Shown here piece by piece: positions 27,955 through 63,683 of a stretch of DNA of 64,000 bases (the first letter of the stretch is position 1; every line of letters starts with the position of its first letter). A model generated the notes under the pieces. That model searched no databases. It was given only the letters and a program-made list of their open reading frames with translations, and was not told the origin of the DNA. Source of the DNA: Lepidodermella squamata (taxonomy: Eukaryota > Animalia > Gastrotricha); contig JBLDXI010000019.1 of the NCBI GenBank assembly GCA_047495785.1, positions 1,488,001 through 1,552,000 of the forward strand, given 5' to 3'. The position numbers were made by a program, and so were the translations under genes.

Positions 27955-28565
27955 ATTTTATGCTGTTTCACATTCGAGAATGTCTGGCATTTATTTTTTT
28001 GTCTTATTTTTTTGTCTAGAAGGCGACAGTTGCCTTCGGCGCTGCGCGAGGCGAGCCCCGTTTACAGACTCTTCCACTAAATAATTCCAAAGAGTATCCA
28101 TGGCGCAACGAAGCAATTTCTATCGGGTTTGGGAGAAACAATGAAACCGCCGAACATGGCTAAGTTTGAGAATTGTAAATTATTAAGTGTTGCAACCCTA
28201 TTTATTTTAAAGTAAGGCTGGGATATCGATCTGCAGAAACAAACAGGAGCAGCACGGAAAGTCAAAAAAGCTGCATACTTAATTTTGCAAAATGTACATT
28301 TGGATTGCAAAGAAAATGCCTCTGGATTGTATTGATAGTCGATAATCCGACAGTACTGTTCCGACTGTCGAATCAGTCACCTATTGAACTAATTCAAATT
28401 GCCCATTTATCTGTATCTTGATTTATGCCGCCAATTGGGAATTATTCATCGAAAACTAGGTCATTCTTTCGATAAAATTTCACTTTTCGACTATGCTACG
28501 GCTTACTGCTTGGTGTAATTGAGTAAGAGTAACTGCAATTAAAAAGGTTCGGCTTATTCTCGAGA

Positions 28566-35810: not shown

Positions 35811-36449
35811 TATGTCTACATATTTTTATATATTGGGCAGCTGAGTTTTCAAGGGAGATCACACATTGGACAGCTGTCTATTTAAGTTAAGGCCCATGAA
35901 AATCCCGAGGCCCAAGAAACCCGAGGAACCCAAAATAGCTTCACTATTCAAAATTAATTGAGCGCGTTGCTATACGACAATCGGCCCCAATTTCGACAAA
36001 ATCTAGTAGAATTCGGCCTCAATTTCGACAGCATCGTGCAGCACTCAGCTCCAATGTCGACGAAGGCGAGGACGTTCGGTTTTCCAACATATTTCCTCAT
36101 CTATGTCCTCTGTATTCACATAACAAAACGCCGACTCTCATAATATTCAACGCTTTTATTTAATGAATCATTGCATATTTATAATCAAAGGCCATGAAGC
36201 ATTACCATCGCAATAAATTACAATACACTTATCTCGCAAACATCAACAAAAAAATTGATCTCGAGATGGATATATCAATAAACCGCTAAAACATTTCATG
36301 ATCCCTCTAAGTAAAGGACTAGCAGAGGATCGTTATTCCGAAACAGAAGGCCACAAGAAGTAAAATAATTATAACTCATTTTTTTAGAAAAGGCTATTCG
36401 AATCCTTCCTATAAGATATCCAGGTGCTCGAGGCTTATCTGCTTAGGTG

Positions 36450-39400
36450 TTAAGTTTTGAAATTCATCTTATTTCCGGGCTGTTGCGGAGGAGGCATCAT
36501 CGGTTTCTGCATCATTTGCTCGAGCCGATTTTTCAGGAAAGGCGAGCTGACTGAACCAGAGTTGGACATCAAATACTCAAGGCCGTAATTTCTGTTCCAT
36601 TCATACTCAAACTGGTGCTCAGGAATCTCAGCATCCGGCCTGCCCTCCAGGCCTGTTTCCGCCAGGGTGAACTCGCACATTGCCATATCATCGACACCAG
36701 CCAGTTTCAGGACAGGATGCATGCTGTCTCGAAGCTCGAGTTGTCTTGCAATCCACTGGCCATCAAAATGAGCCAACCACCAGCCAGCAGTATACGACGC
36801 GCCTCGTGTTCCCATTTGTCTTAAAGGCAGTCTGAAGTAACGTTGCTTTGGAGGTTCAGGGGGTCTTAATACAGGATCGGTAGTATGTTGGACCAGAGTT
36901 AGAGGGGTATTGAATTGCTTATTCAGCGAAGGAACGTTAGCGCTAATCATAGTTTGATCGCTTTGCTGCTGCAAGGCGTGGCTCATGACCGACCCCGGCA
37001 TTCGTTCCTGAGTGCTGGCGACAGCTGTCTCATCACGGCCCCGATTACGCATCTTCCACTCGTGGTAGATGCGTAACCGGCGATGAAACTCTTGCCGACA
37101 CTCCTCGATCAGCTCAATATCGCACGAGGTATTGATTGTATCGCGAAGATCAGCGTACTTCCAGTTTGTCACGTCATGTTTCTTTTTCGTCCCAGCTGAT
37201 CCGGGCGGGGAGGGTTGTTTGACCTCAGCAGGTGGTGGTGATTCATCGACAGTTTCTACCTGATTGCCGTTAGCCATTCGAAGGGCGAGTTCGTGGTCCA
37301 GTTTCTCCTGCATCGCCTTCTGCATTTGCACCTTCTCACCGTCTCGATCGATCTGTTCCTGCAACGACTTGGCAAGTTTCGCGTCTTCAGTCTCAGAAGT
37401 TGTCCCCTGCTGCCGCATTCGCTCCATCTCAGCTTTCTGCTTTTCGATAGCGGCAAGGGCGATCTTTTTAGCTGCTTCTTCTTCCGCCCTTTGCTTTTCC
37501 TCTCGAGCTTTCGCCTCGGCTTCCTCCTTCTCCCGGCGTCGCTTCGCCTCAGCCATTTCAGCTTCGAGTTTCCGCAGCCGCTCCAACTCAGCGTCACGAG
37601 CGTCTTGTTCGGAAAGACGTTTTTCGACCTCCTTGATAAAACGTTCAACATCGGTCGTCCTCGCCACAACCCCAACTTCAATCGCCTTCTTTTCCAGTTT
37701 TCCTTTCGTGTCTTTGAGTTTTAAGATTTCCCCCTCAATCGATTTTACCAAAACGTCGTACTCCGCATCAGTTTTCTTTCTAGCCTCGTCCTTCAGCCTT
37801 GCAACAGATTTCGAAATCTCGTTGGTGACTCGTAATTTCAAAACTTTAAGGCGCATGACTGCGTTGAGTCTTGGTCTTATCTTCGCTCGAGCCAGTAAAC
37901 CACGGGTCATTTTCTGGATAATTACGACTTGTGATTTCCGATGAGCCATTCGCCGTTTGACGCGAATGGCGCTCAGCGTAAAGAATTGCGCCTTTCGCCA
38001 GCGCGCTTTGATAATCCAGTGTTTAACGTTTTCGATGAGTTTACGCAGATTTTCGCCATCAGACCGGACCATTTGGTCGAATTCGGCAAAGCGGCCCGAT
38101 CGGAAGAAGACGCGTGTTGTGCCAAATGTGAAGTCGCCTTCCTTCATGCCAACGGCTTTGCAAAGAGCCCGACAGAACATGCGCGGATCTAACTTGGCCA
38201 AGCTTGCTGGTAGCATACCTTTGTACAAGCTGCAAAACATCAAAAAATCATCAGTCAGCTTCCAGCCATTAAAAACACAGTTAAAGAAGACTTTATTTTA
38301 CCTGTAAAAGTCTGCAAAGTTGACTCGAGATGGATAGCCTTGTTGCATGAGTCTGAGAGCTTCCGTCATTCCACTGGCCTGAAGCTGGCTCAGAACAGAT
38401 GCAGCTTCGAACTTCTGAGGTGACATTGCTGAATTAGGCTTGACGCATCTTATGAAATGCGTTCCAGTTGCCTGTAATTTCGCAATCAACTGATTAAGCT
38501 GCTCACGGAACTTGGCGCTTATGCTGACAAAAGCTAGCTTATTAGGGGTCGAGCCAGCCGAGCCTTGGCGCGGCTTTGCCCCATCGCTGGTGAAGATACG
38601 TCTTAGCAATTCGTTCGAGCTTGAGTGAACAAGACCCTCTAGAGATGCGTGAAGGGCATCGTTGTTCTTCTCCAAAAACCCAGCAGTTTGATAACAGACG
38701 GCCCCGGCGTAGTGGCGAATGACAAAGCCTTCTTCATCACGAACTTCTTTATGCGACTTCAACTTCGACTTCCTTGGAACACATAATCGGAAATGGCCAT
38801 TGTTAAGGCGGTGAACTTCCTGAGTGAAATGCTGACTACTAGGCCGCGGGAACTTCGACTCTTCGTCCATCAAGTAGAAAATCCCCCCAGGTTTAACGTC
38901 GAGTAGTTCAATGCAATCTTCATTGTCGACGAAGTTGATTCGACTGAAGGTAAGGCCTTCTTTTTCATACAGGTCCTGTTCAGCCTTCAGGACTCGTTGC
39001 GTGAAAAATTGTTGCAGCCGTTCGTTGCAGTAATTCACGCAAAATTGTTCGAAGCTGTTAACATCGAAAAATTCGAACCCGGCAATGTCGAGAACGCCGA
39101 TGAATTGCGACGCTGAAGTTTGGTCGAAAGGCAGTGAAGAATTCACTGCTCCGACTACGAAGTCAAATAGCCGGCTGTAGATCGATTTCGCCAAAGCGTC
39201 CCGGGCATTTCTCGCTGCCGTAGCACTAAGCTGGACGTTGCAGGCTGTACCTTTCGCGCCCTCGGCTCCCATCATAACTCTTGTGGTCAGCGCGAGGGAC
39301 AGGGCGGACTTATCGACGCCTAGGAAGTTACTAGCGACTGAGAGAGATTTCGTAACGGTAGGCGAACGTTCATCAACGACGCAGCCTCCCTTCGTATCCC

Positions 39401-40525
39401 GATCGTTATCGATAAACTCAATATTTCCAAGGTGTAAAATTGCCGCTAATATTTTGAAAATGTTGTTTTGTGACGAGGCCAGTCCCATTTCGGACATTGC
39501 CTTCGTTGTTTTCGCAAAATCAGCCGCGTCGTCGAGCATGTCGTCTTTCAGGAAGTTGCCGGATGTCGCGGAAGATTTTCGGAAAAATTTCGCGCAGCCG
39601 TTTCTCAGATAAGCGAATTCTGTTGGATCGGCGAGGTTCAACTCGCGGCGCAGTTCTTGATCGGTCAAACCAGCGCATAGTTGATAGAAAATGTGGTAAT
39701 TTCGCTCCTCCCCATTTTGCATGCAAATTCGAGATTTTTCCAGCAAGTAATGCGAAATATGGGCCCCCGCAACTTGATTACCTGGAAAAACATGAAATTT
39801 TAGAAAAATCCTAAAATTTTAAGAACAGTGCTCACTCGCAGAGAAGTGGAGTTCGATGAATTTTCCGAATCTACTGCTGTTATTATTTCGTCTGGTTTTC
39901 GCGTTACCAAACGCTTCCAGCAATGGGTTCGACTCAAGAATTCGCTGCTCGACAGGCCCAGCCCGCGTGCCCCAATTCTCGGTCAGATATCGCAGAATAT
40001 GCTTCGTACATTCGGTTTTTCCAGCCCCGGATTCGCCGCTAACAATCACAGCCTGGCTTGTTTTTTGCACCTTCAACGAACGATGGGCGTTATCGGCAAT
40101 CGCAAAGACATGCGGAGGCATTCTTCCCAGCGATTTGTCGTTGTAAGATTTGATGCATTCAGCATCGTACAACTTCGCAATTTGTTTATAAGGATTAACT
40201 GCGATCAGAATATTCCCGACGTAAGTGTAGATTTTGTCGTTGAAATATCGCCTCTTGACATTTGCAAGTAAAGTAGCTTCGTTCAGGAACAAAAGCGAGC
40301 AATTATCGTCGACATCGGGATTTTTCGGATGTTCAGCGCGAAGAACAGACGAAAAAGGCACGGTATGCTATAAAAAAATGTTTTCATTAATTCTACATGT
40401 TTTGCCTTTCTTACCTTGGCATTTCCGTCTAATGTTTGAACAAGGGCTGAATCCGCTCGAATATCGATAATTTTACCCTGGACATAAGCGTCAGTGGGGC
40501 TGGGGATCCATACCAGCTCATCCAT
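36450..40525 (-). CDS. MYO6: Unconventional myosin VI
   Basis: P-loop [24 protein letters not shown], insert-2/IQ (RWRKAQ...[11 protein letters not shown]), SAH, MIU (DHELALRMA) and cargo-binding domain ([25 protein letters not shown]; [11 protein letters not shown]). Four coding exons. Confidence 0.95.
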
Positions 40526-41646
40526 TGTCTGGTCTACTTATTTTTAAAGGCAGTGTAATTGTTCACCTGGAATTTCAAAAAAAAATATTCTGCGTGATGA
40601 AATTTCCAGAATACGTTATTATTGCGAGCCCTGGTGTCACGCAATACTTGGTATATGGGGAGCAAAAATTTGTTTCGCGATGTAATTTTTATGACACATA
40701 GCCGCGATTAGGCGATGAGAAAGCGCACGCAAATACTGCTTTGCCGCAGCAGAGTCGGCAGCAGTCCATCAGTCAGTCATATCGCGCTCGTCATGCCGCA
40801 CATGTGTGTGTGTGTATGCGAATGTGGACAGGTATAGGTAGATTTTTTTCGCCAGCGCACATCGATTTTTTGCGCGCGCACACATCAGATGGAGCCCAAT
40901 TTAAAATAGTATAATGTTGTAAATATAAATTAGGGGTAGAAATAACAAGCCATCCTGATGTGTAATCTCTCGACGCGCGCCAGGCCTTGATGCGCTTTAC
41001 AATATGCACTGGCTAAAAACTGCCGGTACGATGGGCTTTCCAGGCAAGAAAAAGGCAGGCATTCAACATAAAATTCAAACGAAATGTATGGCGAATTTCG
41101 GTGGTGAATTGCATTAGTAAAAAATCATCTTAAAAATTTGAAAATTCCTCCTTAAAATTTGGCGACGAGCCACTTAAGTGATTTAAAAAATTGGAAAAAT
41201 TAATGCAAAATATGATAAAAATTGTGGCAAAATTGCTGAATCGATATCGTATCATCGTCCACCTTAACGCGCCGTCGGCGAGCCACGCGATATGGCTAGT
41301 TTGCGGCCAAAGGTGTGAAAATCAGCTGCGCCCAGGAATATAGCGCCTCATTTGAAGCGCGCGCACGCCGCCTTAACAACAAAATGGTGCGTATTTGCCT
41401 TGTTGATGGCTCGCACACCACGTGGCGCGGCGGCACCCACTTTACCTGACTCGCGTTTCACCGATATAAACGTAAATAACAGTAGAAACGCAAAAAATTA
41501 CTCAATGAAACATGAGTAAATATGTGTATTACAAATGGACCGCGCTTCTGCTTTTACCGAGTAATTACATAAAACAACAAACTGTGGCGCAAAAATACTC
41601 AAAAATTTATTCAATCGATTTTTCACAACACTATATTAATATTTGG

Positions 41647-44600
41647 TCAGAAAATTTCACGGAGTGACCGGTAAAATGGCAAATTTTCTGTTTGAACCAT
41701 CGCAATAGCAGCCACGTAGAGAAGTCCGGCGAGTAGACCAAGCCTAGCCATGCGATGCGGCAATTTTCGATCGTCATCAGTTAGGCGATATTTTTCTTCA
41801 ATTCGAAACGCTTCAATCACGCTGATCAACGGCAGTACGAACGCCCAAGACCAGTTCATAGTACAGGCAAAAAATATGATATATGGCGAGAAAAGTAGCA
41901 CGCAAAACACGACATAGGACATCACTGGACCGATTAAAATAGCCAGGGTGACTATTCCGGCTGATTTATCGGCTGCTGAGTCTCTCACGTTGTTCGAATG
42001 AAGAACGGCCTCGGTGTGGGATGCGATTGGAATCGCGTATAGGACAGGTAGAAGTGACAACCCGCCGCATTGAGCCATGTAGGCGAAAATCACGACTAGA
42101 GGGCCGAATGTTGTGATGATGACAATATCGCCCAGTGCCATGTATTTCAGCCCTATTCCGCCTGTGTATAAAAACGACGATGACATGCCGCCGAAGTAGA
42201 CCAGAGATAGCATTTCGATCCGAGCCGGGCTTAGATTGACTAGAATGAGGAAGAAAACGCAGGCTGCCGTGTAGAGAAGACCGCCTAGCGAGACGACATC
42301 GGCTGGAGTTAGGATATGGTCGACCAAAGTCCGGTCATCGCTTCGCTTTGTATCGATTCCACCTAAAATGTCAGGAAGATAGCGTTAATGTTAAACCCTC
42401 TCTATTTTTGAAATTCTTCGAATTTTTTAGAATCTTGAATTCGGAAAACTGATTAATGTAAAGCAATGCCAGAATTGAACGTTACCCAACTTAAGTTACA
42501 CCCATTCGTCGAAAATCCATACCAACAGCATTAAAGCCACTGATAAGTACAGAAAACTGAAACGATTTTCAGAATTACGCGTCCAAGGCTGGTAAGAAAA
42601 GCGGAAGCTTCGAAAAAAATCTGGCAGGACTAGCTCAAAGCTGCGTTTTTTGAAACTCAAAGAAGTACAGGGTGTTCAAGAAATAATAGTTGGGCTATTT
42701 TTAACTTGGACTTTAACCAGATTGATGTTGACGACCTGGCTATCGTGGACGTAGCACATTGACCTCGTGGACCTCATCCATAACACAACTCTACTCAGTT
42801 TCAGTGTTTATTATCGCGTGTCGAGCGTCAATTTTCAGATCTTTTCGCGTGCCGGAAAAGTGGGGGAAAGAAATATAAAAAGATCATTTTTTTAATTTTT
42901 TAAATAAAAAACAATACCGATTTTATTTTATACCAATTTCACTCTAACATTTAATGGCGCGTTTTAAATACCCCGATGAAATTCGGGGTAAAATGGTCAC
43001 CATGTTTATCGAAAATCAGCGTAACGCGTCGAAAACTGCAATGCAATTCAAGCTTGCCTATCCGGAATACCAGAATGTTACCTACAGAACTATTCTGTTT
43101 CAGTGGCGTAAATTTGATCGCTTCGGTAGTTGCTCCGATCGCAAAGCGCCCGGTCACTCGGCGAATGTTATTACCGATGCAAACATCGATCGCGTAATTC
43201 ATTTCTACGCTCATTCGCCAAAAACCTCACTAACCGATTCTTCCAAGATGTTACGTATCGGGCGCACATCTGTTCATACAATTTTATCGATGCACAATTT
43301 TCATCCCTACAAAATGATCTATACTCAGGCTTTTCAAGAAGATGATTACGAAAAAAGGTTAAATTTTTGCCGATGGCTACTCAATATGGAAGATGAACTG
43401 CATGCATTTCTCAACAAAATTCTTGTGGGTGACGAAGCTTTATTTCGCCTTGATGGCTTCACGAATCACCAAAATTACCGTTGGTGGTCTCCCGTTAACC
43501 CAAACTGGATCATGGATATCAAAGATCAAAGTTCTCCGAGAATAATGGTGTGGGCGGGTATCTGGGGCGACCGAGTAATCGGGCCATATTTCTATGATCG
43601 ATCAAAAGCAGTTATTATGCCGCATACCGATATAAAAGCCGCAAAAGGTCGAAAAATTGAATATTAGTAAGTCTTGTAAGTTTATGCGCGTTTCCTCATC
43701 GCTGACACCGTTAATAGAACTCAGAAACAGGTCTATTAAGCGGGCAATGCATTTTTCGAATTCCTCATCAAAATCAAATCCTGGGAAGCGGCAGAAAATG
43801 TCGAATACCAACAACCAACCAATCCCCTCATACGAAGCGGAAATGGATTCCGATAGTCTCGGTCCGCCTCCAGATCCGCTTTCACCGGAGCAAATTTTGG
43901 AATTGAGTGGAATTGAGAAGAGGACGAGAAATGAGGTCAAAAGTAAAATTGCGCGCCTTTATTCCTTTTTTCCGCCTCATGCGACTCGAGTGTCTGTTGC
44001 CACGTCAAGTCGCGTGTTGTCTGGTCAAAGTTCAATACTAAAAATAGTCCAACTATTATTTCTTGAACACCCTGTATATGAAACGGCCACACTTGGCACG
44101 CGTAGTTCACTGGACGATGCCTTGTCGGCCACATTGGTGTGACGTCGGATCAACGAACGGTATCAAAATCAACTGGGCTCCGCGGCACATGGCTACGCTA
44201 AGAACGATCGGACGCCTGATCAACTTCGTATGCTTAGACGCAGGTTCAGTTCTGTATCATGACTGGACGACGGTAACTTCGGACAAGGAAACTCGTTTTT
44301 TGCTGTGATCAGTTTGACCGACGAACTCTTGGCTGTAGAGCTAGCTTCTAACAGCGCTGTCACAGAACTGGTTAACCAACCTGTTGCCGTTGGCTCCCCT
44401 CATCAGGCAGGGAAATTAACAATCTATCAATTTCAAATATCGGGGCCAACGTCAGATGAAAGCTTAGCCAAGACAGTTTGTCCAATCACTTCGTTTGGGC
44501 TGAAGAAAATTTGCCGCGAGTCGCAAAGAACACGGTCCACGGGGCATAAATGGTACGGCTGTCCATTGTTAGCGACCCAGCAGATCATCGAGGAGTTCCC

Positions 44601-46057
44601 ATGTTCCGAGTCGGACTCTGAGACCGACTCGAATTGTTACGTATCCTACAGTACCTGAAGCCACGAAAAATAGCCGGAAGGATAGTATTAGAGCCGAAAA
44701 ACAAAGGCTTTACGGCTGATAAGAGCCGGGTCTTATCGAATTCGCATATGATAGATCCTCAGTATGGAAATCGTTTAGAGAAGTAGCAATCCAAGAACAA
44801 CTCAAGAGTAGTTTCAAGGAAATGATGACAATACAGTAAGGATATCTCATTAAATCGGTCTCATTGAATATATGTACCTACTCTCGCATTTACTGCCTTA
44901 TTACCGCAAATAATTGCTAATTATTTTCATTATTCCCTTCGTTCCTCTTGACTGAATGGGGAAAAGTTCAACTTGACAATAGACAATAGATGACAATAGA
45001 TAAACGACAATAGATAAACGAAGAAAACCGCGTCAATCCTTAGAACCTAAAACGATGATCCCTGTCATCATACGGCAAGAAGCTGCCCGAGAATTGGCTA
45101 TTCAAGAGGAAAAGGAGTAAAACCGCGAAACAAATGAAAACAGTCGCCCGCTCGACATCAACGAAGTCTTGTGTGTCGATGACCAGATGCAGGTACATCA
45201 CGCCTTTACTAAGCAGTTTCATGTTTCCCATGGTCCAATCGCAGTTCTGCGAGTCGTGGTGACGCGATCATTGTTTACATTGGTAGCAGCGGTCAAAGAC
45301 TTAGCTACAGAGGCACATCTTCATTTTCATTTCTACCTAGGAAACATTCTTTAAGAATATAAAGACCATGGCGTCAGAAGATGTCAGCGATAATGTATCC
45401 GTCACCTCCGACCTGAACAGGGTCACCGTCGTGGTGACGGGTTATTTCAATAAACTCAACACGTCTCTCAAAGTTTGAAACAGTCTCATTGATCTCGTGA
45501 GTGCAATAACTTGGTTTCGGCTAAAGATGCCGATCAATTTTCTGGAGAGACAACCTATCGATAGGACTCAATTATCCACAATTACCGAGGTGAGAGAGAG
45601 ATACACCAAAGGATTTTCATCAATTGCCTGAAACCGGTTTCAAACGAGTGTGATCGATCGCCGATTCAAGGATTTCTATTGCGCACTCATGAAAAAAATT
45701 ATTTGAGAACCCGCTTAGTTTTCGCAAAATCTTATCTAATCTTAGAAATTAGAAGCATGCAAAATAGTAAACTCATGCCTACGTTTGAAGTCGTAGTAAG
45801 TATTGACCAGATTTCCAGCTGAATGAACGCATATCACCGTCAGGGCTGTGAGCAGCAGAATAGCGAGATCGAAGGTGCCTTGCAGCTTGTAGGCGAGGAG
45901 ATTGCCAAGAATTATCGGCGTCAACGAAACGGCAAGCGACCATGGCCGAATGGCTTGCACATAAAGAGCCCACCTGAACAAAAAAGTTATCAATTTTCAA
46001 TAAAACTCAATTAATTCGCCATTAAAATTACTTCGGCGATAGAATATCACGCAGCAT
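41647..46057 (-). CDS. UBIAD1: UbiA prenyltransferase domain-containing protein 1 (heix/MenA-like)
   Basis: MLRDILSPK|WALYVQAIRPWSL...HSAGNLVNTYYDFKR|GIDTKRSDDRTLVD...LHSNNVRD. Exons 46057-46032, ~45973-45783 and 42362-41647, with a 3.4-kb second intron. Confidence 0.92.
42668..44074 (+). mobile_element. Tc1/mariner-superfamily DNA transposon, internally deleted, in the UBIAD1 intron
   Basis: TA-flanked ~55-bp TIRs CAGGGTGTTCAAGAAATAATAGTTGG.CTATTTTTA at both ends; transposase ORF inside. Confidence 0.9.
42954..43667 (+). pseudogene. Truncated Tc1/mariner-type (DUF4817-like HTH) transposase
   Basis: HTH region, FHPYK, RLNFCRW, first catalytic Asp in GDEALFRLDGFTNHQNYRWW, and MVWAGI..VIGPYF. 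Homology stops before the second and third catalytic residues. Confidence 0.85.
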
Positions 46058-46303
46058 CGAGATTCAGGAAAATTAAACACAACAAAATTCCCTAATTCAA
46101 AATATTGCAACACTTTAACAGAATTATCCGTGAGCGTCGAGTTTTTATTCGAAATATTGCATGCTTGAATAAAATTTTCGAGGCAGTAGACAAATCAAAT
46201 TGAAAAGAAAAAATCACAGAATAAAATCAGGAGATTCAAAATACTGAAAATATGGTGAAAACACGTGAGAAAGCAGGCGCTAGAAAGTTTAAATTTGATT
46301 GCG

Positions 46304-47506
46304 TCAAAGCTCGTCATTGATGACAGATTGTCGATTGCGTTGAATTCTACGCTGGCGAATCGCTGACAGACGATCGCAGGCGGACTGCACGTTGAGAAAA
46401 ATATTATGCTCCTTCTGTTTTCGCTCCTCGTCCTGAAAACGATCGGGGTGGTGCTCTCGCAACATTTTACGGCACTGCTTATCAATTTCGGCTTCCGAGG
46501 CGCCGGGTTCAAGCTCCAGGGCAGTAAATGCCGCTTCTTCGCCTAGCGGATCTGATATTTTTATGAAGCGGTTCCAAGCTTGACCAGGGCCGTGAGAGAA
46601 CAACGTGGCAAAAATGTCGTAGATGACAACTTTCAGATCACGGAACGCCTCGGAGCTAGGCGAAAAATTCACTTTTTTTAATTTTTTGAAAAATCTTAAT
46701 AAACTTACTTGATGAAATTTTTCAATGCCTCGCTGACTGGAACTTCAACCCCGTCATGAGTGATAGTGGCGTTGTGGAAAAATGCCGAAAACCACAGTGC
46801 ATAGACAATACTGACGAAAAACGCGAATTTAGTCAAATGCGTGAAGTACGACTGTTTTTGCTCGAGATTCAGTTCTTCCATCGTTCGGAGGCGATTTCCG
46901 CGGTAATTTGACCAAATCGTCGAGCTCAGGGCCATGTAAAATATGTTTGAAGGGCCGCTTCGAATGATTAGGGGCAGAGTTAGAACTGCGCCGAGCAGAC
47001 TTTGGCTGAAATCTATACGCTGAGAACCGATTCCGCCAACGAACCAGATTCCTAATTTAAAATTTAAAATGCGAATACTTTTTTAATTATTTCGGAAATT
47101 TCACTAAAAATTTACCATAGGCAGTGACAACAGGCGTGACGATGCAGATGAACGAGTAGTAAATCGCTGCATGGCTATTAAGCCACGATTCAGGGACAGC
47201 AGACAGTGTGCCGTAGCCGAGAACACACGCAAAAACCACCTCGGCAATGCATCGCTCCCACGAAATTTCCAACCGTTTCTGGCGCCGTCGAGCTAAATGC
47301 AGATCAATGTAATCTTCGTCGAGATTTGCCTCGCTGACATATCGCGGAATGGCCAGCATATCGTAGAGAAGCCCCATGCCGTACCCGCCAAATGTGCAGC
47401 AATACAGGACGGCTTGGCGGGATCTTTTTAAATACAACAAGTGCCAGGAAAAGAGGCCACCGGTGAAAAACAGCACATAGGCTAGCCACGTGCTTTTTAC
47501 GGCCAT
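46304..47506 (-). CDS. DNAJC22: DnaJ homolog subfamily C member 22 (wurst-like): TM2 N-terminus, C-terminal J domain
   Basis: KSTWLAYVLFFTGGLFSWHLLYL (TM2), several TM segments, and a J domain with HPD (REHHPDR); three exons. Confidence 0.88.
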
Positions 47507-47622
47507 TTTTTCAAAAAAAAAATCTAGAAAAATAGTTTAAAAATTATTAATTAAAAAATACCACCTTAATTTATTGCCAAACACCGTGCGATAATTTAAT
47601 TCAATTTGTATGTTTTATCAAG

Positions 47623-49887
47623 TTATTTAATAGAATGAAGCGCCCGTTGGCGGACGTCGGAATTTTGAAAGAGCGCGCGGATAATCGTCCGCAATTCGTC
47701 AGCAGCGAAGGAATTCGCAAGTGGCCCAGCACCATCAGCCCAGCGGTTGACAATCGACGCCAAATCGCTATCCAGCAGCGAAATCATGTCGAGAAATCGC
47801 GGCCATTGCTCCGGGCTCAATTTCGACAGGAAGACTTTGCCCATGATTTGCGATGAAGATGTCGAATTATTTTCAGCAGCAGCGATTGCTCCGACTTTTG
47901 TTATCATATCGTCACTAAATCGGGTCAACATTTCGAAATGAACGCGTGATTCAGCGTCGCTGATATCAACTCTAGACGCCAGATTTGTTACCATATTAGC
48001 CAAAACTGCATCTAACAGCAAACCAAGGGCGGATGAGGCAAGAGTTTGCGGTAGAACGGTTCGAAGTGTAGAAATTACGTGGGCGAGTTTTGAAACCACG
48101 TTCGATAGCGACTGCTCGCAACGAGCCCGAAACCCGGTCGCCATCAATTTCCCACCCGCGCCTTGAACCCAGGCGTCTAAATCAACCTCGAGCAGTTGCG
48201 ACCGAGTTTGGTCAAGAGCCTTACGAAACAAACCCCAGCCATGCGACCTGGCTGGTTGAACCATGTCGAGAAATAAAAAGGGTGGTAGAGCTTTTTTGCA
48301 CGTTTCATTCGACTTAAACGCCGAAAATTCGACCTCAAGCAGAAGTAGCGAGTTTGCGAAGTAGGCGCAATCGCATAAAATTATCGCGGCACTAGTTAGA
48401 TTTCCGCATTTTAGCGAGGCGGTTCCAACGGGTAAGAATGCAAGGAATAAATCGGCAACATGGCGGGCACAAGGCGCCATGAAACGAAGGACACTTGACA
48501 ATAACGGCGAATTCTTCTCGCCCTCATGCAGCGCCAGAGTTTTGATTTCATCGATAATTTGTCGCAGTAATTCGACAAGTTTCACTAGAAATGAGCTGAC
48601 CTGACAATGCGGCAGCGAAAACAAATTTTGATTAGCTGAACCGAATAGTGTCTCATTCAATGAATCGGCCGATAGACGGGATGGCAATTTCACTTCGATT
48701 GAGCTCGGAGCTTGTTTGAAATCGCTCGAAATTGCGACCAAATCGTCCCAATTTAGTAGCATTAAATCTCGAGCCTGAAGCAACATTGTGGTTTCATATT
48801 TTTCCAAAACAATATTAACATGAGAATCTACAAATTCTTCCAGCGTTTTATTCGGTTCGGGTTGGAAACCAGCTTCCTCCAGATAATTCTGCAATTCCCT
48901 GACTTGAACAGTCAACTGGTGGAAACTGCTCAATTTTGATGGTCTATTAGGCAGTAAGGGTCGAAGAAAAATCGAGCAAAACAGTGAAGACATGTCTCCA
49001 ACAATTTGCGAACCAAATCGAGCGACCAAGTCGTGGTAGAATTTTCGGCTTTTTACGAAAACAAATATGTGCTCTTTAACGAATTTGAAGACTGAAATTA
49101 TTGAAGGCACCACAGCCATAGCCGGAGATTCAGTGCCGCAGTCAAATCGATCTGGGCTATCAGTCAAGTCTTCTTTTTCTAGATTCAACACCAACACGTC
49201 GGCATTTTCGTTAATCGACGAGGCAGATCTACGCAAAACTGGTACGATAATATTTGATAGCAACTGATTCGCAAACAGCACGAAAACATTGATCAGTAAA
49301 TCGTAGCTTGCTTCTTTGCACAGATTTTTCAAATATTTCTGATCGACTGAGCAAGAAATGGAATTTTCATTCGAGGTCACGGTAATACACTGGTCCAGAC
49401 AAGCCCCGAGCCATTCTGATGACACTTTCTTCCATTTTTCCACTTGTTGAGCAACGCCAGCGAATACCTTGGCGCTACGAAATGGGCTTTCGCTCAAATC
49501 GTGCCGTAACTGTTCGACTTTGACCACAAGCCGATAGAAGTCTTTCTCGGCAAAATGTGATTCGATTTCTTTTACAGTTTTGATAGATTTCTCTGCAGCG
49601 GTGAGCAGATCGATAGATGCGTCAATTTTTTCGACTTCTTTCAACTTGTTTTCCACAGCCTCTTGCATTGAAGATAAATTAGCCAACAATTCTTGACTCT
49701 TCTCATTCCGATCGTAGATTTCTTTCAAAGTGTCGTCGCATTGCGTGAAAACTGCATCGGTTCCCTCCACCAATTGGTCAATGCCATCAATCTCATTGGT
49801 AACTTCCTTCAACTTTTCAACAGATTGCCGGAATTTCAACACGGCTGAAACCGATTCGCGATCTGATGAAGCATCAATTGTAGTCAT
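47623..49887 (-). CDS. ZW10: Centromere/kinetochore protein ZW10 homolog
   Basis: Intronless 754 aa. C-terminus LASIVNRWADGAGPLANSFAADELRTIIRALFQNSDVRQRALHSIK is typical of ZW10, and the internal FSLPHCQVS motif is present. Confidence 0.88.
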   Translation of the reverse strand: MTTIDASSDRESVSAVLKFRQSVEKLKEVTNEIDGIDQLVEGTDAVFTQCDDTLKEIYDRNEKSQELLANLSSMQEAVENKLKEVEKIDASIDLLTAAEKSIKTVKEIESHFAEKDFYRLVVKVEQLRHDLSESPFRSAKVFAGVAQQVEKWKKVSSEWLGACLDQCITVTSNENSISCSVDQKYLKNLCKEASYDLLINVFVLFANQLLSNIIVPVLRRSASSINENADVLVLNLEKEDLTDSPDRFDCGTESPAMAVVPSIISVFKFVKEHIFVFVKSRKFYHDLVARFGSQIVGDMSSLFCSIFLRPLLPNRPSKLSSFHQLTVQVRELQNYLEEAGFQPEPNKTLEEFVDSHVNIVLEKYETTMLLQARDLMLLNWDDLVAISSDFKQAPSSIEVKLPSRLSADSLNETLFGSANQNLFSLPHCQVSSFLVKLVELLRQIIDEIKTLALHEGEKNSPLLSSVLRFMAPCARHVADLFLAFLPVGTASLKCGNLTSAAIILCDCAYFANSLLLLEVEFSAFKSNETCKKALPPFLFLDMVQPARSHGWGLFRKALDQTRSQLLEVDLDAWVQGAGGKLMATGFRARCEQSLSNVVSKLAHVISTLRTVLPQTLASSALGLLLDAVLANMVTNLASRVDISDAESRVHFEMLTRFSDDMITKVGAIAAAENNSTSSSQIMGKVFLSKLSPEQWPRFLDMISLLDSDLASIVNRWADGAGPLANSFAADELRTIIRALFQNSDVRQRALHSIK

Positions 49888-50036
49888 TATTTTTTTAACG
49901 ATTGCCTATCGAAAAGTTGAAATACATTAGCTTTCACACCCCACATAACGTTCGGTTTATTTTGAAACGCCAGTTTAACATTTATTCATATTGTGGAAAA
50001 AGCTAATATGACAAAGAAGTGTGAATATTTTCAGCT

Positions 50037-51020
50037 TCAGATGGATCCTGGAAACTTCGAAAGAATCGATGGCTGATTGGGGAACAGCTTCGACAGCGAG
50101 CCGTACATTTCCTTGTAAACACCTCTGATTGTCGACTCAGCAACGCCGGTGATTTCAGCGACCTGTGTGATGCTTTTGTTCACATCAACAGCAAGCGTAG
50201 CCAAAACGACGACAGTCGCAGCTGAAATAGGGCATGTAACAAAGGATCATCTAAAGAGCTACAATTACTTACCGACACTGACAGGTGAGCGGCCGCGGCA
50301 TAAATCTGATGACGAAATTTTCGATGCAATTTCTCGAGCCATGCGGATAACAGACTGTGGTAGTTCCAAAAGAGCCGCAAAGCGCTCCAAATAGTCATTA
50401 GACGAAATAAGAGGAACTTCGAGCTTCGTGTCAACGCTTTTCATTATGAGCTTGAAAACACGGCCGATTTCCTTTTTGGAAACTTGACAAACGGCGCAAA
50501 TTTCTTTGAATGTACGAGGAACCTGCTCCTGTCTGCAAGCCATGTACAAGCAAGCACCGACGACTGCTTCTGCATTACGGCCTTGTACTTTCTTAGAGTC
50601 GTGAACTTGTTTGAAAATACGTTTTCCAGTATTGCAAATACCATTTGGCAGATTTAGGCGATCACACATTTGCGACAATGATGAAAATGCGTTCATCAGA
50701 TGTCGATCTGACGCGCTCATTTGTTTACGATTAGCATAAACTGGTTTGCTACCGTCAGTGGCTTGAAATCCCGGCATCTGCTGGATATTCGTTGACAAAT
50801 CCTGGTCGTCGTAGAAATCATTTTCAGCAGCACCGACACGAGAGCGATCGACACCACTCTCTTTGTCAGTGCTCGCGAACGTGCGCCATTCTGATGAAAC
50901 GTCGACTAGCCGATCACCAACAACTAAACCACATCGTGGGCAGATGAGATCTCCGGCTGAGTAGTCCTCAACAAGAGCTTCCTCTGGATGCTTGGGACAA
51001 CACAACTGCCTTTGTGTCAT
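50037..51020 (-). CDS. GTF2B: General transcription factor IIB
   Basis: Zn ribbon CPKHP..LVEDYSAGDLICPRCG, B-reader SEWRTF, SRVG, CLYMACRQEQVPRTFKEI, GRSPVSV. Second exon ~50221-50037 reads (A)ATVVVLA..EITGVAESTIRGVYKEM..GSI*. Confidence 0.95.
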
Positions 51021-51419
51021 GATACAGTCTTGAAAAGTCTATATACTGGGAAGAATTATAACATTGTCAATCGATTCTCTATTCTTCAACGCATGAAAAG
51101 GCAAGAATGGCGAAAAGCAAAATAACGCTACAACACCATTCAACGCAGTAATGAGCTTTTTAAGGTGGAATAAGATGCAGGTTTGAAGTTCAGCGTTAGG
51201 AGACCAAGATTAGGATACCCGAAACGCTTTCAACATATGAAAGCTGAAAGCTTCAGGCTGCATCGGAGTCAATCTGTAGCACAAGTAGCATCGGAGCGTT
51301 CGCAAAATCGAGCTAAACATTGGCCGGATTACAAAAGGCAGGTCTAGCGAAGTCCATACGGTGGTCGTCTACTTATCCCATTTGCATTCCAATAGAGATC
51401 AATTTAGATTTTTTCGCAC

Positions 51420-51600
51420 CTAAAAAAATCATGCGACAAATATAGACTTTCAAATTAAATTTTATGTGTGATGTATGTGATAAAAATAATCTCTTGAATT
51501 GACGATGTCCTTCACGTTTATTTCTGCCCATAATTTTTTTTCGAACGGCAAAAAAACTGCGATGTAAAGACTCGTCATCGCCGCGTCAAGAATGCAGCCG
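51420..51600. promoter_or_regulatory. Probable bidirectional promoter region between the divergent TFIIB and PUS10 gene runs
   Basis: Positional inference: it is the only head-to-head point in 31.8-64 kb, and lies upstream of a TFIIB leader acceptor at ~51420. Confidence 0.45.
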
Positions 51601-51944
51601 GCAGCCGGCAACCCTTTCGAGATCGTAGCCTTCTATGCCGCTACGTGGGACGATTTCTTACCTATTGCCCGTTAATGCTGCGAAATGGGTTTTTGAATTG
51701 AGCCCGTCCGATCTGTCTTGAGGAGTGGGCTACTCGAATGTTATTTCACATGTCCGGGACTTAACACACGTATTTATGCCACTCATCCAACTATTGCTCT
51801 TCATTCGTAGCTCTGGTGTTGCCTTAATTAACATTGATGTTGAGGGTTCCCTCAATCGTGTGTGGTTTTCATTTTATTTCTGGCTGCTACTGGTTGCATC
51901 TTCTCAGCAACTTGTTAATCATGTTTTATCGTGTTCTATCTAGG

Positions 51945-53537
51945 ATGTATTTGTGCGCACGTTGCATTGATCTGGAAGCCATCGCGTTAGCTCCAAGTGG
52001 TACGCGCACTTTCGTGACTGTTGAGCCTGATGAAAATGTCTGCTTCTCTTGCCTGGGTTTATTGCAAACGTTTGTTAGCCAACAATTCATATCGTCCTTG
52101 TGTGAGCGCATCGCTGAACAGAAGTTTCAACATAAGTTTGTTCGCAGTTCGTTGCTACTCCCAAGTTGTTTGTATTTGCGCCAACACGTGGTGGTGCGGA
52201 AAACCATGGGAGACAAAGGCCTAGCTGGGGTAGATTTGAGAGTATGCCTCCTCAAAAGAATGTCTTATCTGAAAGCTGCTTGGCGTGAGTTGTGCGTTCC
52301 CCACCTCGAAAAGACCCTAGGTGTCACTCATCTGGATGGAGATGGTTCTGGAAACGACACTCCCTACTTCGACGTCTTAATCACATTTGACTACGCTTAT
52401 AACGACCTGGAATGTTCGCCTTTGCATAAGTACTTCCCCAAAAGACTCCAACACGTGAAACCACTGAAACGACCCGTCGAAGACTACAAAGGTTCCCTAG
52501 ATATTTCGCCAAACAAGAGTCTGAAACCATCGCAGTTTACGCTGTTAGCCGTAATGGATGCTATTTGTTCTGTTCCATTAAATGAAAATGACCAATATTT
52601 TGAGAAAATTGAAAAAGAGTTCAATAATCATCCATCAGTCGGAATAAATTTGCAAACGCAGCCTGTTTTTGCTTCACAATCAATCTACGTCTACGGTAGG
52701 TATAGAAAACTGTGTCGTGATTTACCGCAGTCGGCGTGGACCCTGGATGACGCAGACGCTGATGATGTTGTTGTTGAGAAGCCAACTAATCAGGCTGTTG
52801 GAGAGTATAATATGGGCCGCTACAAGACTTCTATTGAACAAATCATTGGCGAGCCTTTGCTTAAATACACTGGAGCTGAATCTTATCGATTCTCAGCTGC
52901 TGGTCGAGAAGATGTTGATGTGAGGATGCTGGGGTCAGGCCGGCCGTTTTGTATTCAACTAGTCAACCCCAGAGTGCCTTTTGCCTTGACTCCCGCTGCT
53001 ATGAGTGAATTAAACATAGAGGAAATGAAGGCGAAAAACAGATTGGATATCTTCGGCTTCGAAGAAACCATGAGCCGATTTCCTCTTGATAACATGAAAC
53101 ACGGCGAGGGTCAGAAAGAAAAAGAATATACGGCTGTCTGCTTCATCAGGAAATCATCGGCTTCTTTCCCAGACATCGAAAAGATTTGTGAAATTGTGAA
53201 TTCAGTGAAAACTCCGCTGGAATTGAAGCAAAAGACTCCAATTCGCGTTCTTCATCGCCGATCGCCTGTCGTTCGTCTCAGGCATATCATGAAAATTGAT
53301 GCATTTCCGTTCAAATGCTCTAAAAACGCCACTGCCTTTGCTTGTCGACTTCGCACGGAGGCTGGAACCTACATCAAAGAATTCATTCACGGTGATTTGG
53401 GTCGAACTGTGCCAAATATCGCTCAAATTATTGCTCAAGAGTTGGGTTTGAATGAAGCAGAAGTTGATTGCGATATCGTAACGTTGGATGTTACTGATAT
53501 ATCAGATTTGAAAACCACTGTGCCTCCAAAACTGTGA
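51945..53537 (+). CDS. PUS10: tRNA pseudouridine synthase Pus10
   Basis: N-terminal CARC...CFSCLG zinc ligands, GRYRKLCRDLPQSAW, catalytic GREDVDVRMLGSGRPF, QKTPIRVLHRR and AGTYIKEFIHGDLGRT. The ATG at 51945 follows an acceptor CTAG|G. Confidence 0.93.
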   Translation: MYLCARCIDLEAIALAPSGTRTFVTVEPDENVCFSCLGLLQTFVSQQFISSLCERIAEQKFQHKFVRSSLLLPSCLYLRQHVVVRKTMGDKGLAGVDLRVCLLKRMSYLKAAWRELCVPHLEKTLGVTHLDGDGSGNDTPYFDVLITFDYAYNDLECSPLHKYFPKRLQHVKPLKRPVEDYKGSLDISPNKSLKPSQFTLLAVMDAICSVPLNENDQYFEKIEKEFNNHPSVGINLQTQPVFASQSIYVYGRYRKLCRDLPQSAWTLDDADADDVVVEKPTNQAVGEYNMGRYKTSIEQIIGEPLLKYTGAESYRFSAAGREDVDVRMLGSGRPFCIQLVNPRVPFALTPAAMSELNIEEMKAKNRLDIFGFEETMSRFPLDNMKHGEGQKEKEYTAVCFIRKSSASFPDIEKICEIVNSVKTPLELKQKTPIRVLHRRSPVVRLRHIMKIDAFPFKCSKNATAFACRLRTEAGTYIKEFIHGDLGRTVPNIAQIIAQELGLNEAEVDCDIVTLDVTDISDLKTTVPPKL

Positions 53538-53630
53538 TCTAGTTGTTGCAGTCATTAAATCTGATTTTATTTCATTTAAATTTCATAGGTTTTTATTTTT
53601 GTTTGATGTTTTATCTATCTCGGCACAATA

Positions 53631-62600: not shown

Positions 62601-62799
62601 TACGAATGTCCGCCTTCAAAATGTTTTAAGCTGGATGCCCCCGGCGCCGGGTGATGTTTTCACATTGCTGCCAGATCGAGAAACAATCGCACCAAGCGAT
62701 TCGGCCTACAACATCTTGGCTTGTTTGGCAAAACTACGCTTTAAATTATCGCAAATCGAGGTTCAATCTTCGGCTGCCGTTCGTTTGTACCGCGTTTGA
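53631..62799 (+). CDS. UNC79: Protein unc-79 homolog (NALCN channelosome subunit)
   Basis: N-terminus MTTKSATFTAKIKALTDFHN..GSDVANSLKYFNQTLLGILRDVP, FPNLAYSALF, YTAESTS, LLFHYWP, FVHREPALAAPLLLD, C-terminus FKLSQIEVQSSAAVRLYRV. About 11 exons, including a 63-nt exon at 58850-58912. Confidence 0.9.
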
Positions 62800-63188
62800 A
62801 AATGACGAATGAATTAACAGTGCAAACAAATATTGTGTGATTATTTTGTATTTTTTGGAGTATTTTCTCACCCCTGGTTTTTCATCGCTCATTGTTGCTT
62901 ATGAACATATCATTTTTCTAGTCGAAAGCTAAATCTCTTCGTTTGAGTCGAATCTTTATTGCTGCTTGCCCTGACTGCCGTATTTTTATAAAACTGCCAT
63001 TACTTTTTTGTCAATTTGTCGTGTCAAGTCTTCTTAGACGGTGCCTCTCGGACGAGAAATCCTATTGCATGCATTTTTCTATACTATTTTTCTATATATT
63101 TATTTTAGCGCGTCAAATATTGTCATTAAAATTCTCCTTAATTATGGTCTTATTTTTCTAATTTTTAGGGATTTAATTTAAGTTTAAG

Positions 63189-63683
63189 ATGGCTTTGGCT
63201 GATTTGCCGTGCTACACCTTGATCCACGCTTCTGCCGATCAGGAGCCGATCAATGAGATGAACATCCGTCAAACCTTCGAAAAGGGACGCCCTAACGAGA
63301 AAGCCGATGCTTTGAAACGCGTCATCGTCGCCATCATCGCTGGTGAAAAAATGAGCCCTTCCATGCTGATGGCTGTGATCCGCTTCGTCATGCCCACGCA
63401 CGATCATTTGATCAAAAAATTGCTGTTGATTTTCTGGGAGGTTGTGCCGAAACACGGCGCCGATGGCAAGCTGTTGCATGAGATGATTTTGGTCTGCGAT
63501 GCCTATCGTAAAGATCTGCAGCACCCTAACGAGTTCTTGCGTGGCTCAACTTTGCGTTTTCTGTGCAAGTTGAAGGATCACGAGCTGCTTGAACCACTCA
63601 TGCCGGCTATTAAGGCCTGCTTGGACCATCGCCATTCATACGTTCGTCGCAACGCTGTTATGGCTATCTTCACTATTTACAAG
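63189..63683 (+). CDS. COPB1: Coatomer subunit beta, first coding exon (gene continues beyond the window)
   Basis: [72 protein letters not shown]; donor AA|GTAAGT at 63684. Confidence 0.95.

Follow-up and report, generated by a model that had tools for sequence, protein, structure and literature searches.

Operons whose transcripts are resolved by leader trans-splicing are a mechanism known from other animals, and both leader trans-splicing and the operons are scattered over the animal phyla, with their origins debated. One design is the SL2-type operon, reportedly described in Caenorhabditis elegans: approximately 100 nt separate the poly(A) site from the acceptor, the acceptor reads UUUUCAG, and the downstream genes receive a specialised leader, SL2. 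In another design, said to be found in the tunicates Ciona and Oikopleura and in the SL1-type operons of C. elegans, the acceptor lies directly against the poly(A) signal or site, or overlaps with it. Flatworms, including Schistosoma, reportedly also have leader trans-splicing and operons.

The locus studied here lies in a 64,000-nt stretch of the gastrotrich Lepidodermella squamata, the whole of which we call the window. Like SL2-type operons, it consists of unrelated, mostly housekeeping genes on one strand, in which a poly(A) signal, a U-rich stretch and the acceptor-like site of the next gene follow each other at constrained spacing, and the gene order is conserved across species. It differs from them in the distance from the poly(A) hexamer to the acceptor, 23-52 nt against the approximately 100 nt from the poly(A) site in C. 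elegans, and in the acceptor-like site itself, which is TAG/R (the slash marking the splice point) and not UUUUCAG; the claim of an earlier note on this DNA, that the spacing is shorter than that of SL2-type operons, holds at the level of sequence. With the tunicate and SL1-type operons, the locus shares intercistronic DNA that is very short or absent, and one kind of leader could be enough for all the genes. Unlike in those operons, every junction retains 23-52 nt of spacer, which include a GU- or U-rich stretch, although the shortest spacers, 23-25 nt, approach their condition. Short junctions between the poly(A) signal and the acceptor would also be shared with flatworms, a likeness that does not imply a common origin. 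Flatworms and gastrotrichs are regarded as closely related (abstract of PMC6468455). The leader-splicing lineages named in PMC5619915 include flatworms and do not include gastrotrichs. A full-text literature search found no published paper tying Gastrotricha to leader trans-splicing.

Gene Run and Junction Signals

Five genes, TFIIB, ZW10, DNAJC22, UBIAD1 and MYO6, follow each other head to tail on the minus strand (Table 1). Their identities come from Pfam scans of the exon ORFs: Zn_Ribbon_TF and TFIIB repeats (E 6e-37) for TFIIB, whose best matches are spiralian TFIIB at ~55% identity; three ZW10 domains for ZW10; TM2 in exon 1 and DnaJ in exon 3 for DNAJC22; UbiA for UBIAD1; and Myosin_head (E 6e-142), MYO6_lever and Myosin-VI_CBD for MYO6. 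The coding sequence of UBIAD1 is interrupted by intron 1 at 46031-45974 and intron 2 at 45782-42363; the size of the latter, 3420 nt, is swollen by a transposon. The earlier note had read the start and stop codons, the gaps of 149, 116 and 246 nt, the hexamers, the AGs and a donor at 41445 from the sequence, and we found every one of them where it had been placed; the hexamer-end-to-AG distances of 50, 46 and 52 nt were likewise reproduced.

Table 1. Genes, junctions and spacers of the locus, with positions in the window
Feature	Positions	Strand	Details
MYO6 CDS	36450..40525	-	introns 40414-40368, 39835-39782, 38301-38230
UBIAD1-MYO6 spacer	40526..41646	-	1121 nt; GC 0.42 (ordinary)
UBIAD1 CDS	41647..46057	-	exons 46057-46032 (26 nt), 45973-45783, 42362-41647
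Junction 3 (DNAJC22-UBIAD1)	46058..46303	-	246 nt
DNAJC22 CDS	46304..47506	-	361 aa; three exons; introns 47115-47052, 46708-46656
Junction 2 (ZW10-DNAJC22)	47507..47622	-	116 nt; AATAAA 47575-47570; U-rich tract
ZW10 CDS	47623..49887	-	754 aa; single exon
Junction 1 (TFIIB-ZW10)	49888..50036	-	149 nt
TFIIB CDS	50037..51020	-	310 aa; two exons; intron 50272-50222 (51 nt)
TFIIB/Pus10 divergent spacer	51021..51944	.	between TFIIB ATG (-) and Pus10 ATG (+)
Pus10	51945..53537	+	first gene of mirror-image run; TAG/G 1 nt ahead of ATG
Pus10-UNC-79 junction	53538..53630	+	93 nt; ATTAAA 53554-53559
UNC-79-adaptin junction	62800..63188	+	389 nt; last ATTAAA 63125-63130

The three gaps between TFIIB and UBIAD1 contain similar signals. 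At junction 1, two AATAAA hexamers (49986-49981 and 49961-49956) are followed by a GU-rich stretch at 49949-49935 and an acceptor-like site, TTTTCGATAG/G, whose AG ends at 49906; the ATG of ZW10 is 18 nt further on, with no upstream ATG between them. At junction 2, the acceptor-like site TATTTTTCTAG/A (AG ending at 47524) lies 17 nt ahead of the DNAJC22 ATG. Junction 3 has just one AATAAA, at 46149-46144 and 155 nt past the DNAJC22 stop codon, and its acceptor-like site TTTTGAATTAG/G (AG ending at 46092) is 34 nt ahead of the UBIAD1 ATG. When scored with an acceptor weight matrix trained on 28 cis introns of the window, the site of junction 2 is strong (10.3 bits, top 0.6% of all AGs), while those of junction 1 (4.1 bits, top 11%) and junction 3 (5.2 bits, top 7%) are only middling and, each on its own, not distinctive: 40-50% of AT-rich control ATGs reach such scores within their upstream 60 nt. 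A scan with a donor matrix found no donor-like GT within the gaps of junctions 2 and 3, and the sole one of junction 1 lies 33 nt upstream of 49906, too near for pairing. At all three junctions, the 3' UTR of the upstream gene occupies nearly the whole gap and the hexamer is just 46-52 nt from the acceptor-like site; since the 149, 116 and 246 nt are mostly 3' UTR, too little space is left for a promoter. This shortage of space applies to junctions 1-3 and not to the 1121-nt gap between UBIAD1 and MYO6.

Form and Statistics of the Junctions

The same layout recurs beyond these gaps. Eight short same-strand junctions, five in the window and three in a relative known from a metagenome, have the last poly(A) hexamer followed after 23-52 nt by TAG/R and after another 15-42 nt by the ATG, without exception (8/8), on either strand and in both species. 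The distance from the hexamer to TAG/R stays at 23-52 nt for gaps ranging from 63 to 389 nt, and the GC content of the short gaps is 0.20-0.32. We formalised the layout as a composite pattern (a hexamer, 20-55 nt, TAG[AG], 10-45 nt, ATG), which was present in 7/7 tested gaps and in 0.6-3.6% of dinucleotide shuffles per gap, figures that overstate the case, the pattern and its distance limits having been set post hoc with the data already seen. The layout exceeds chance. TAG/purine is found at 8/8 junction sites against 1/23 of the other AGs of the same gaps (Fisher p 1e-6), and a purine at +1, present at all eight sites, is seen in only 9/28 cis introns (p 8e-4); the junction sites are, by their apparent form, a class of their own, TAG/purine, distinct from cis acceptors. 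Across ten gene starts, the upstream acceptor-like sites are better than those at AT-rich control ATGs (P ~0.003), and at all eight short junctions a poly(A) signal and then a putative unpaired 3' splice site precede the next ATG. A search of the 64-kb window for a leader RNA gene gave no Rfam match and no credible candidate with a donor and an Sm site.

The same features could, in principle, arise with no trans-splicing at all, if the genome were compact, transcription started within or just before the gaps, and TAG/R were the cis acceptor of a distant donor or some other signal. The strong donor-like TAG/GTAAGA at 51661 (10.5 bits), on the minus strand of the divergent spacer, could indeed pair in cis with an acceptor ahead of TFIIB. 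Junctions 1-3, however, are without usable donors, the TAG/R class is unlike cis acceptors, and splicing in cis would require a common upstream exon to be joined past entire genes, and that three times over; we consider such an account very unlikely.

Comparison with the Metagenome Relative

The relative keeps the gene orders ZW10>DNAJC22>UBIAD1>MYO6 and Pus10>UNC-79, a conservation not calibrated against the background synteny of the pair. The proteins are 52% (ZW10), 63% (DNAJC22, exon 1) and 75% (UBIAD1) identical, with UBIAD1 exon 3 showing 75% identity to P0272, and the 26-nt first exon of UBIAD1 and both its intron positions are common to the two. The spacers of the two species do not align, and one intron has been gained or lost between them. 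The distance from the acceptor to the ATG is similar: 17 nt here vs 15 nt in the relative for DNAJC22, 34 vs 36 nt for UBIAD1 and 42 vs 37 nt for UNC-79.

The head of the run is different. In the relative, TFIIB was not found at the corresponding position; ZW10 and Pus10 are separated there by a divergent spacer of 433 nt, in which ZW10 must have its promoter. As TFIIB is absent from the head in the relative, its link to ZW10 is without support from conservation, and the TFIIB-ZW10 junction is, from the apparent gene content of the two loci, lineage-specific.

In L. squamata, a promoter acting in both directions presumably lies in the spacer between TFIIB and Pus10. Just ahead of the TFIIB ATG, the minus strand of this spacer carries the acceptor-like CAG/T (AG ending at 51046) and TAG/A (AG ending at 51039). 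On the plus strand, the mirror-image run proceeds from Pus10 to UNC-79 across the acceptor-like site ATTTCATAG/G (AG ending at 53588, 10.6 bits; ATG 42 nt on) and from UNC-79 to an adaptin gene across TAATTTTTAG/G (AG ending at 63168, 11.1 bits; ATG 20 nt on). These first genes bear on the possibility that leader trans-splicing is real but involves no polycistronic RNA, the promoter of each gene being hidden within the 3' portion of the gene ahead of it. Acceptor-like sites precede the first genes of both runs here, Pus10 and TFIIB, and also the ATG of ZW10 in the relative, where ZW10 is a first gene; the sites are therefore not restricted to downstream genes. Moreover, UNC-79 starts only 93 nt after a housekeeping gene. 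UNC-79 is a subunit of a cation-channel complex, and its expression is expected only in some tissues; if so, its position right after Pus10 is a poor fit to joint transcription and hints at promoters inside upstream genes. On the other hand, the spacing of 23-52 nt is held even in the gaps of 246 and 389 nt, a constraint that independent units do not need and that coupling of 3'-end formation to trans-splicing would explain, and a core promoter cannot be accommodated in the ~30 nt from the likely cleavage site to the acceptor. Overall, we regard separate promoters for all the genes as unlikely.

The UBIAD1-MYO6 Spacer

The earlier note had extended the operon to MYO6, proposing that a leader is added at 41582 to a non-coding exon (41581-41446), which an 879-nt intron (41445-40567) separates from the gene. 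All the signals that it named exist. An AATAAA at 41611-41606 lies 24 nt ahead of the AG at 41582, a distance within the 23-52 nt of the other junctions; the donor-like CAG/GTAAAG at 41445 ranks among the highest-scoring 2.5% of all GTs; the acceptor TTTTTTTTTGAAATTCCAG/G (AG ending at 40567), 41 nt ahead of the MYO6 ATG, is strong (13.5 bits); and MYO6 is next after UBIAD1 in the relative also. Against the proposal, the leader acceptor is CAG/T with 5.1 bits and not TAG/R, and the donor, at 6.8 bits, falls near the bottom of the range of cis donors; both are only moderate. Both species have a long spacer here (742 nt in the relative), whereas all the other junctions are short; the two spacers do not align and no counterpart of the proposed exon is recognisable in the relative. 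The GC content is 0.42 against the 0.20-0.32 of the short gaps, and a GC-rich block with CACGTG at ~41440-41330 fits a promoter. Given the length in both species and the GC content, an own promoter fits the spacer better than a non-coding exon. MYO6 is probably a separate unit, and an operon of all five genes appears quite unlikely. The predicted fold of 41320-41490 does not stand out (z -2.0).

Discussion

The reading that we prefer, and consider somewhat more likely than not, is that TFIIB, ZW10, DNAJC22 and UBIAD1 form a single four-gene operon, its transcript resolved by trans-splicing of a spliced leader. Under such a model, the four genes would be transcribed into one precursor RNA from a promoter in the 0.9-kb spacer facing Pus10. 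The upstream messages would be cleaved and polyadenylated shortly past AATAAA and ahead of the GU- or U-rich stretch, and a short capped leader, encoded elsewhere in the genome, would be trans-spliced to the TAG/R found 46-52 nt past the hexamer and 17-34 nt ahead of the next ATG; each downstream message would thereby be capped and begin with a short 5' UTR that contains no upstream ATG. The acceptor at 40567 ahead of MYO6 could serve either leader addition or the removal of an ordinary 5'-UTR intron. Of the five-gene operon proposed in the earlier note, the layout has proved real, non-random and partly conserved, and it is consistent with 3'-end formation coupled to trans-splicing; the membership of MYO6 is doubtful and that of TFIIB lineage-specific.

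What the two-species comparison adds at this locus is that it shows a conserved core, ZW10 to UBIAD1 and then MYO6, with a lineage-specific head, TFIIB. A wider reading, which we put forward tentatively, is that Gastrotricha have operons with a junction design of their own, namely TAG/purine 23-52 nt past the hexamer, midway between the nematode SL2 and tunicate types, in which the ZW10-DNAJC22-UBIAD1 core is conserved and the essential gene TFIIB has been gained or lost at the head. If true, gastrotrich operons bear on the question of whether leader trans-splicing predates flatworms. The tight and fixed spacing from the poly(A) signal to the acceptor suggests a coupling of the two reactions, and the difference in head gene between the two species suggests a way for operons to acquire members: the gain or loss of TFIIB between the promoter and ZW10, if confirmed, would provide a direct view of trans-splicing letting operons grow. 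On a practical level, gene-finding software that assumes one promoter and one 5' UTR per gene will annotate such runs wrongly. At the far end of the run described here, the 3' side of MYO6 carries an overlapping ATTAAA and AATAAA at 36164-36155, ~290 nt past the stop codon.

Results

Gene identities in the window were assigned by Pfam scans of exon ORFs, and the exons of spliced models were searched one at a time; a hexamer-based coding score was also tried as a measure of coding potential and dropped as overfitted to its training genes. The cis introns are mostly 46–72 nt long, as in a small-intron animal, and the GC content of about 0.44 agrees with the 43% published for the Lepidodermella squamata genome (PMC11660948). 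TFIIB and UBIAD1 have their closest relatives in other invertebrates, spiralians for the former and mostly insects for the latter, at about 55% identity in both cases. No record matched the single-exon ZW10 protein exactly, and with ZW10, TFIIB exon 1 and UBIAD1 exon 3 as queries the protein collection yielded no protein or transcript of L. squamata.

Genes of the minus-strand run and of its plus-strand counterpart (window coordinates)
Gene	Position	Strand	Basis or remark
TFIIB	51020-50037	minus	Pfam
ZW10	49887-47623	minus	Pfam; single exon
DNAJC22	47506-46304	minus	Pfam; TM2 and DnaJ domains
UBIAD1	46057-41647	minus	Pfam
MYO6	40525-36450	minus	Pfam
Pus10	from 51945	plus	start of a mirror-image run out of the same divergent spacer as TFIIB
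UNC-79	from 53631	plus	second gene of the mirror-image run
adaptin	from 63189	plus	third gene of the mirror-image run

The earlier note had proposed that the five minus-strand genes form one trans-spliced operon, and all its coordinates were exact on re-check: the gaps of 149, 116, 246 and 1121 nt, the AATAAA hexamers at 49961-49956, 47575-47570, 46149-46144 and 41611-41606, the G of each AG at 49906, 47524, 46092, 41582 and 40567, and the donor GT at 41445. To score the sites, we trained an acceptor weight matrix on 28 cis introns of the window, the acceptors of which are weak and AT-rich, roughly TTTT..YAG. On this scale, 47524 and 40567 are strong (10.3 and 13.5 bits) and 49906 and 46092 middling (4.1 and 5.2 bits), the latter two being, on their own, no better than the upstream sites of 40–50% of AT-rich control ATGs. 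Single sites thus do not carry the case, which is one of pattern.

That pattern was tabulated for all short same-strand junctions visible, of which the window has five and a second species, a relative known from metagenome contigs, has three. At every one of the eight, a TAG followed by a purine (TAG/R, the slash marking the splice position) is the best AG that lies after the last poly(A) hexamer and before the ATG, and the distance from hexamer to site stays at 23–52 nt while the gaps range from 63 to 389 nt; with so steady a distance, the upstream 3′ UTR reaches the acceptor whatever its length. The composite pattern occurs in seven of seven gaps with a canonical hexamer and in 0.6–3.6% of dinucleotide shuffles per gap, although its limits were set post hoc, after the data had been seen, and its true significance is therefore below these shuffle figures, though still clear. 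TAG/R characterizes 8/8 junction sites against 1/23 of the remaining AGs in these gaps (p 1e-6); among cis introns, only 9 of the 28 have a purine at +1 (p 8e-4). No donor able to pair with the junction acceptors was found in the three gaps between TFIIB and UBIAD1. At the first of these, a GU-rich stretch (49949-49935) is positioned like the downstream element of a poly(A) site. Upstream ATGs number 1 in the 219 nt after the acceptors against 12 in the 1081 nt before them, a difference in the expected direction, though not significant.

Layout of the short same-strand junctions (distances in nt)
Junction	Gap	Hexamer	Hexamer end to G of AG	Site	AG to ATG
TFIIB to ZW10	149	AATAAA	50	TAG/G	18
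ZW10 to DNAJC22	116	AATAAA	46	TAG/A	17
DNAJC22 to UBIAD1	246	AATAAA	52	TAG/G	34
Pus10 to UNC-79	93	ATTAAA	29	TAG/G	42
UNC-79 to adaptin	389	ATTAAA	38	TAG/G	20
Relative, ZW10 to DNAJC22	71	ATTAAA	42	TAG/G	15
Relative, DNAJC22 to UBIAD1	173	AATAAA	23	TAG/G	36
Relative, Pus10 to UNC-79	63	AGTAAA variant overlapping the stop codon	25	TAG/A	37

The relative is represented by three metagenome contigs (L001-L003), the mutual identity of which, 96–98%, indicates a single species or closely related strains. UNC-79 and Pus10 share one strand of these contigs, and ZW10, DNAJC22, UBIAD1 and the beginning of MYO6 lie on the other, such that order and orientation are kept for six genes, including the Pus10–UNC-79 adjacency. 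The divergence from L. squamata is deep: identity is 52% for ZW10, 63% for DNAJC22 and 75% for UBIAD1, and the spacers do not align. The two species nevertheless have in common a 26-nt first exon of UBIAD1, and the distance from TAG/R to ATG is kept at 17 vs 15 nt before DNAJC22, 34 vs 36 nt before UBIAD1 and 42 vs 37 nt before UNC-79. That the TAG/R sites have kept their positions although the sequence has not been conserved suggests that they are functional. In the relative's Pus10–UNC-79 gap (L001 1563-1627, minus strand), the sole canonical ATTAAA comes after the TAG/A and precedes the ATG by 15 nt. Either the signal is the variant AGTAAA, or the upstream message overlaps at its 3′ end with the 5′ end of the next. 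Exhaustive HMMER searching for more relatives, with DNAJC22 exon 1 as query, returned one close relative only, the one already known, and metagenome contigs, scanned twice, with DNAJC22 and UBIAD1 alignments, yielded no further ones. A more distant UBIAD1, 59% identical and located on a contig of 2.9 Mb, is adjoined by none of the cluster's neighbours.

At the head of the proposed operon, the relative has no TFIIB between Pus10 and ZW10, the latter lying 433 nt from Pus10 (L001 3229-3660, against window 49888-51944); tblastn detected no TFIIB remnant in its contigs, and the intergenic DNA is unalignable. The head of the run has thus either acquired TFIIB or lost it, and conservation lends no support to the TFIIB–ZW10 junction. 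The minus strand of the TFIIB–Pus10 spacer also holds a strong donor-like TAG/GTAAGA at 51661 (10.5 bits), which may give TFIIB a non-coding first exon, cis-spliced to an acceptor at 51046 or 51039.

At the other end, MYO6 more likely forms a separate unit: the spacer that separates it from UBIAD1 is long in both species (1121 nt in the window, 742 nt in the relative; all other junctions are short), is richer in GC (0.42 vs 0.20–0.32 in the short gaps) and holds a GC-rich block with a CACGTG. In the non-coding exon that the earlier note had placed before MYO6, the CAG/T acceptor scores 5.1 bits and the donor 6.8 bits, and nothing corresponding to this exon is visible in the relative. Either leader addition or the closing of an ordinary 5′-UTR intron could be the role of the strong acceptor at 40567. 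The two spacers gave no convincing alignment, a shared 9-mer, GTGAAACGC, being at chance expectation. A small structured RNA after the donor at 41445 was considered and rejected, the fold being unremarkable (z -2.0).

Discussion

The DNA signals are most likely explained by one precursor RNA running from TFIIB to UBIAD1 and resolved by leader trans-splicing. We infer that a promoter in the divergent spacer (51021-51944) would drive a single transcript through TFIIB, ZW10, DNAJC22 and UBIAD1, that each upstream message would be cleaved and polyadenylated directly after its hexamer, and that a capped leader would be trans-spliced onto the TAG/R some 25–35 nt beyond the cleavage. Such an operon would explain the missing room for promoters, the fixed spacing despite varying 3′ UTR length and the conserved gene order. 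Promoters buried inside the upstream genes are a live alternative: UNC-79, a subunit of a cation-channel complex, begins 93 nt after the housekeeping gene Pus10 and, if its expression is tissue-specific, joint transcription of the two fits poorly. Acceptor-like sites are also found before first genes, namely Pus10, TFIIB and, in the relative, ZW10, so that such a site marks trans-splicing or a 5′-UTR intron at most and not operon membership. For the leader RNA gene, an Rfam search gave no match in the 64-kb window, and a search for a donor plus an Sm site produced only implausible matches inside genes.

Leader trans-splicing is itself a known mechanism, and at the level of DNA the TFIIB–UBIAD1 run appears to have all the features of the general class of operons resolved by it. 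As in nematode SL2-type operons, poly(A) signal, U-rich spacer and acceptor follow in succession; the spacing here is much shorter, however, and the one that defines the SL2 type is thus not seen. Tunicate and SL1-type operons, in contrast, have no spacer, whereas here 23–52 nt are left at every junction. Gastrotrichs are not among the lineages listed with leader trans-splicing (PMC5619915), the genome paper of L. squamata does not mention it (PMC11660948), and our literature search found no paper linking Gastrotricha to it.

Several observations concern the surroundings of the run. The plus-strand genes from Pus10 through UNC-79 to adaptin (51945-63189) share the layout of a hexamer followed by TAG/G, with UNC-79 in an operon-like position, and the presumed 5′ UTR of UNC-79 contains an upstream ATG with a 16-codon frame (53605-53655) that overlaps the main start out of frame. 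Intron 1 of DNAJC22 (47052-47115) is missing in the relative (L001 ~6350); one lineage has thus acquired this intron or the other has lost it. UBIAD1 intron 2 is 3420 nt long, against about 65 nt in the relative, swollen by other inserted DNA and a 1.41-kb element (42666-44076) that is flanked by TA and has 38-nt terminal inverted repeats of 97% complementarity; this is probably a decayed Tc1/mariner-type transposon, the sole Pfam hint being a weak HTH_Tnp_Tc3_2 match (E 0.056). Farther along the minus strand, a lectin-like gene block with F5/8 type C, LamG-like and PAN domains is present in two near-identical copies (~11800-17400 and 22300-28000), about 10.5 kb apart and with nearly the same introns (e.g., 14106/24628, 13568/24075 and 16010/26537), which looks like a recent tandem duplication.
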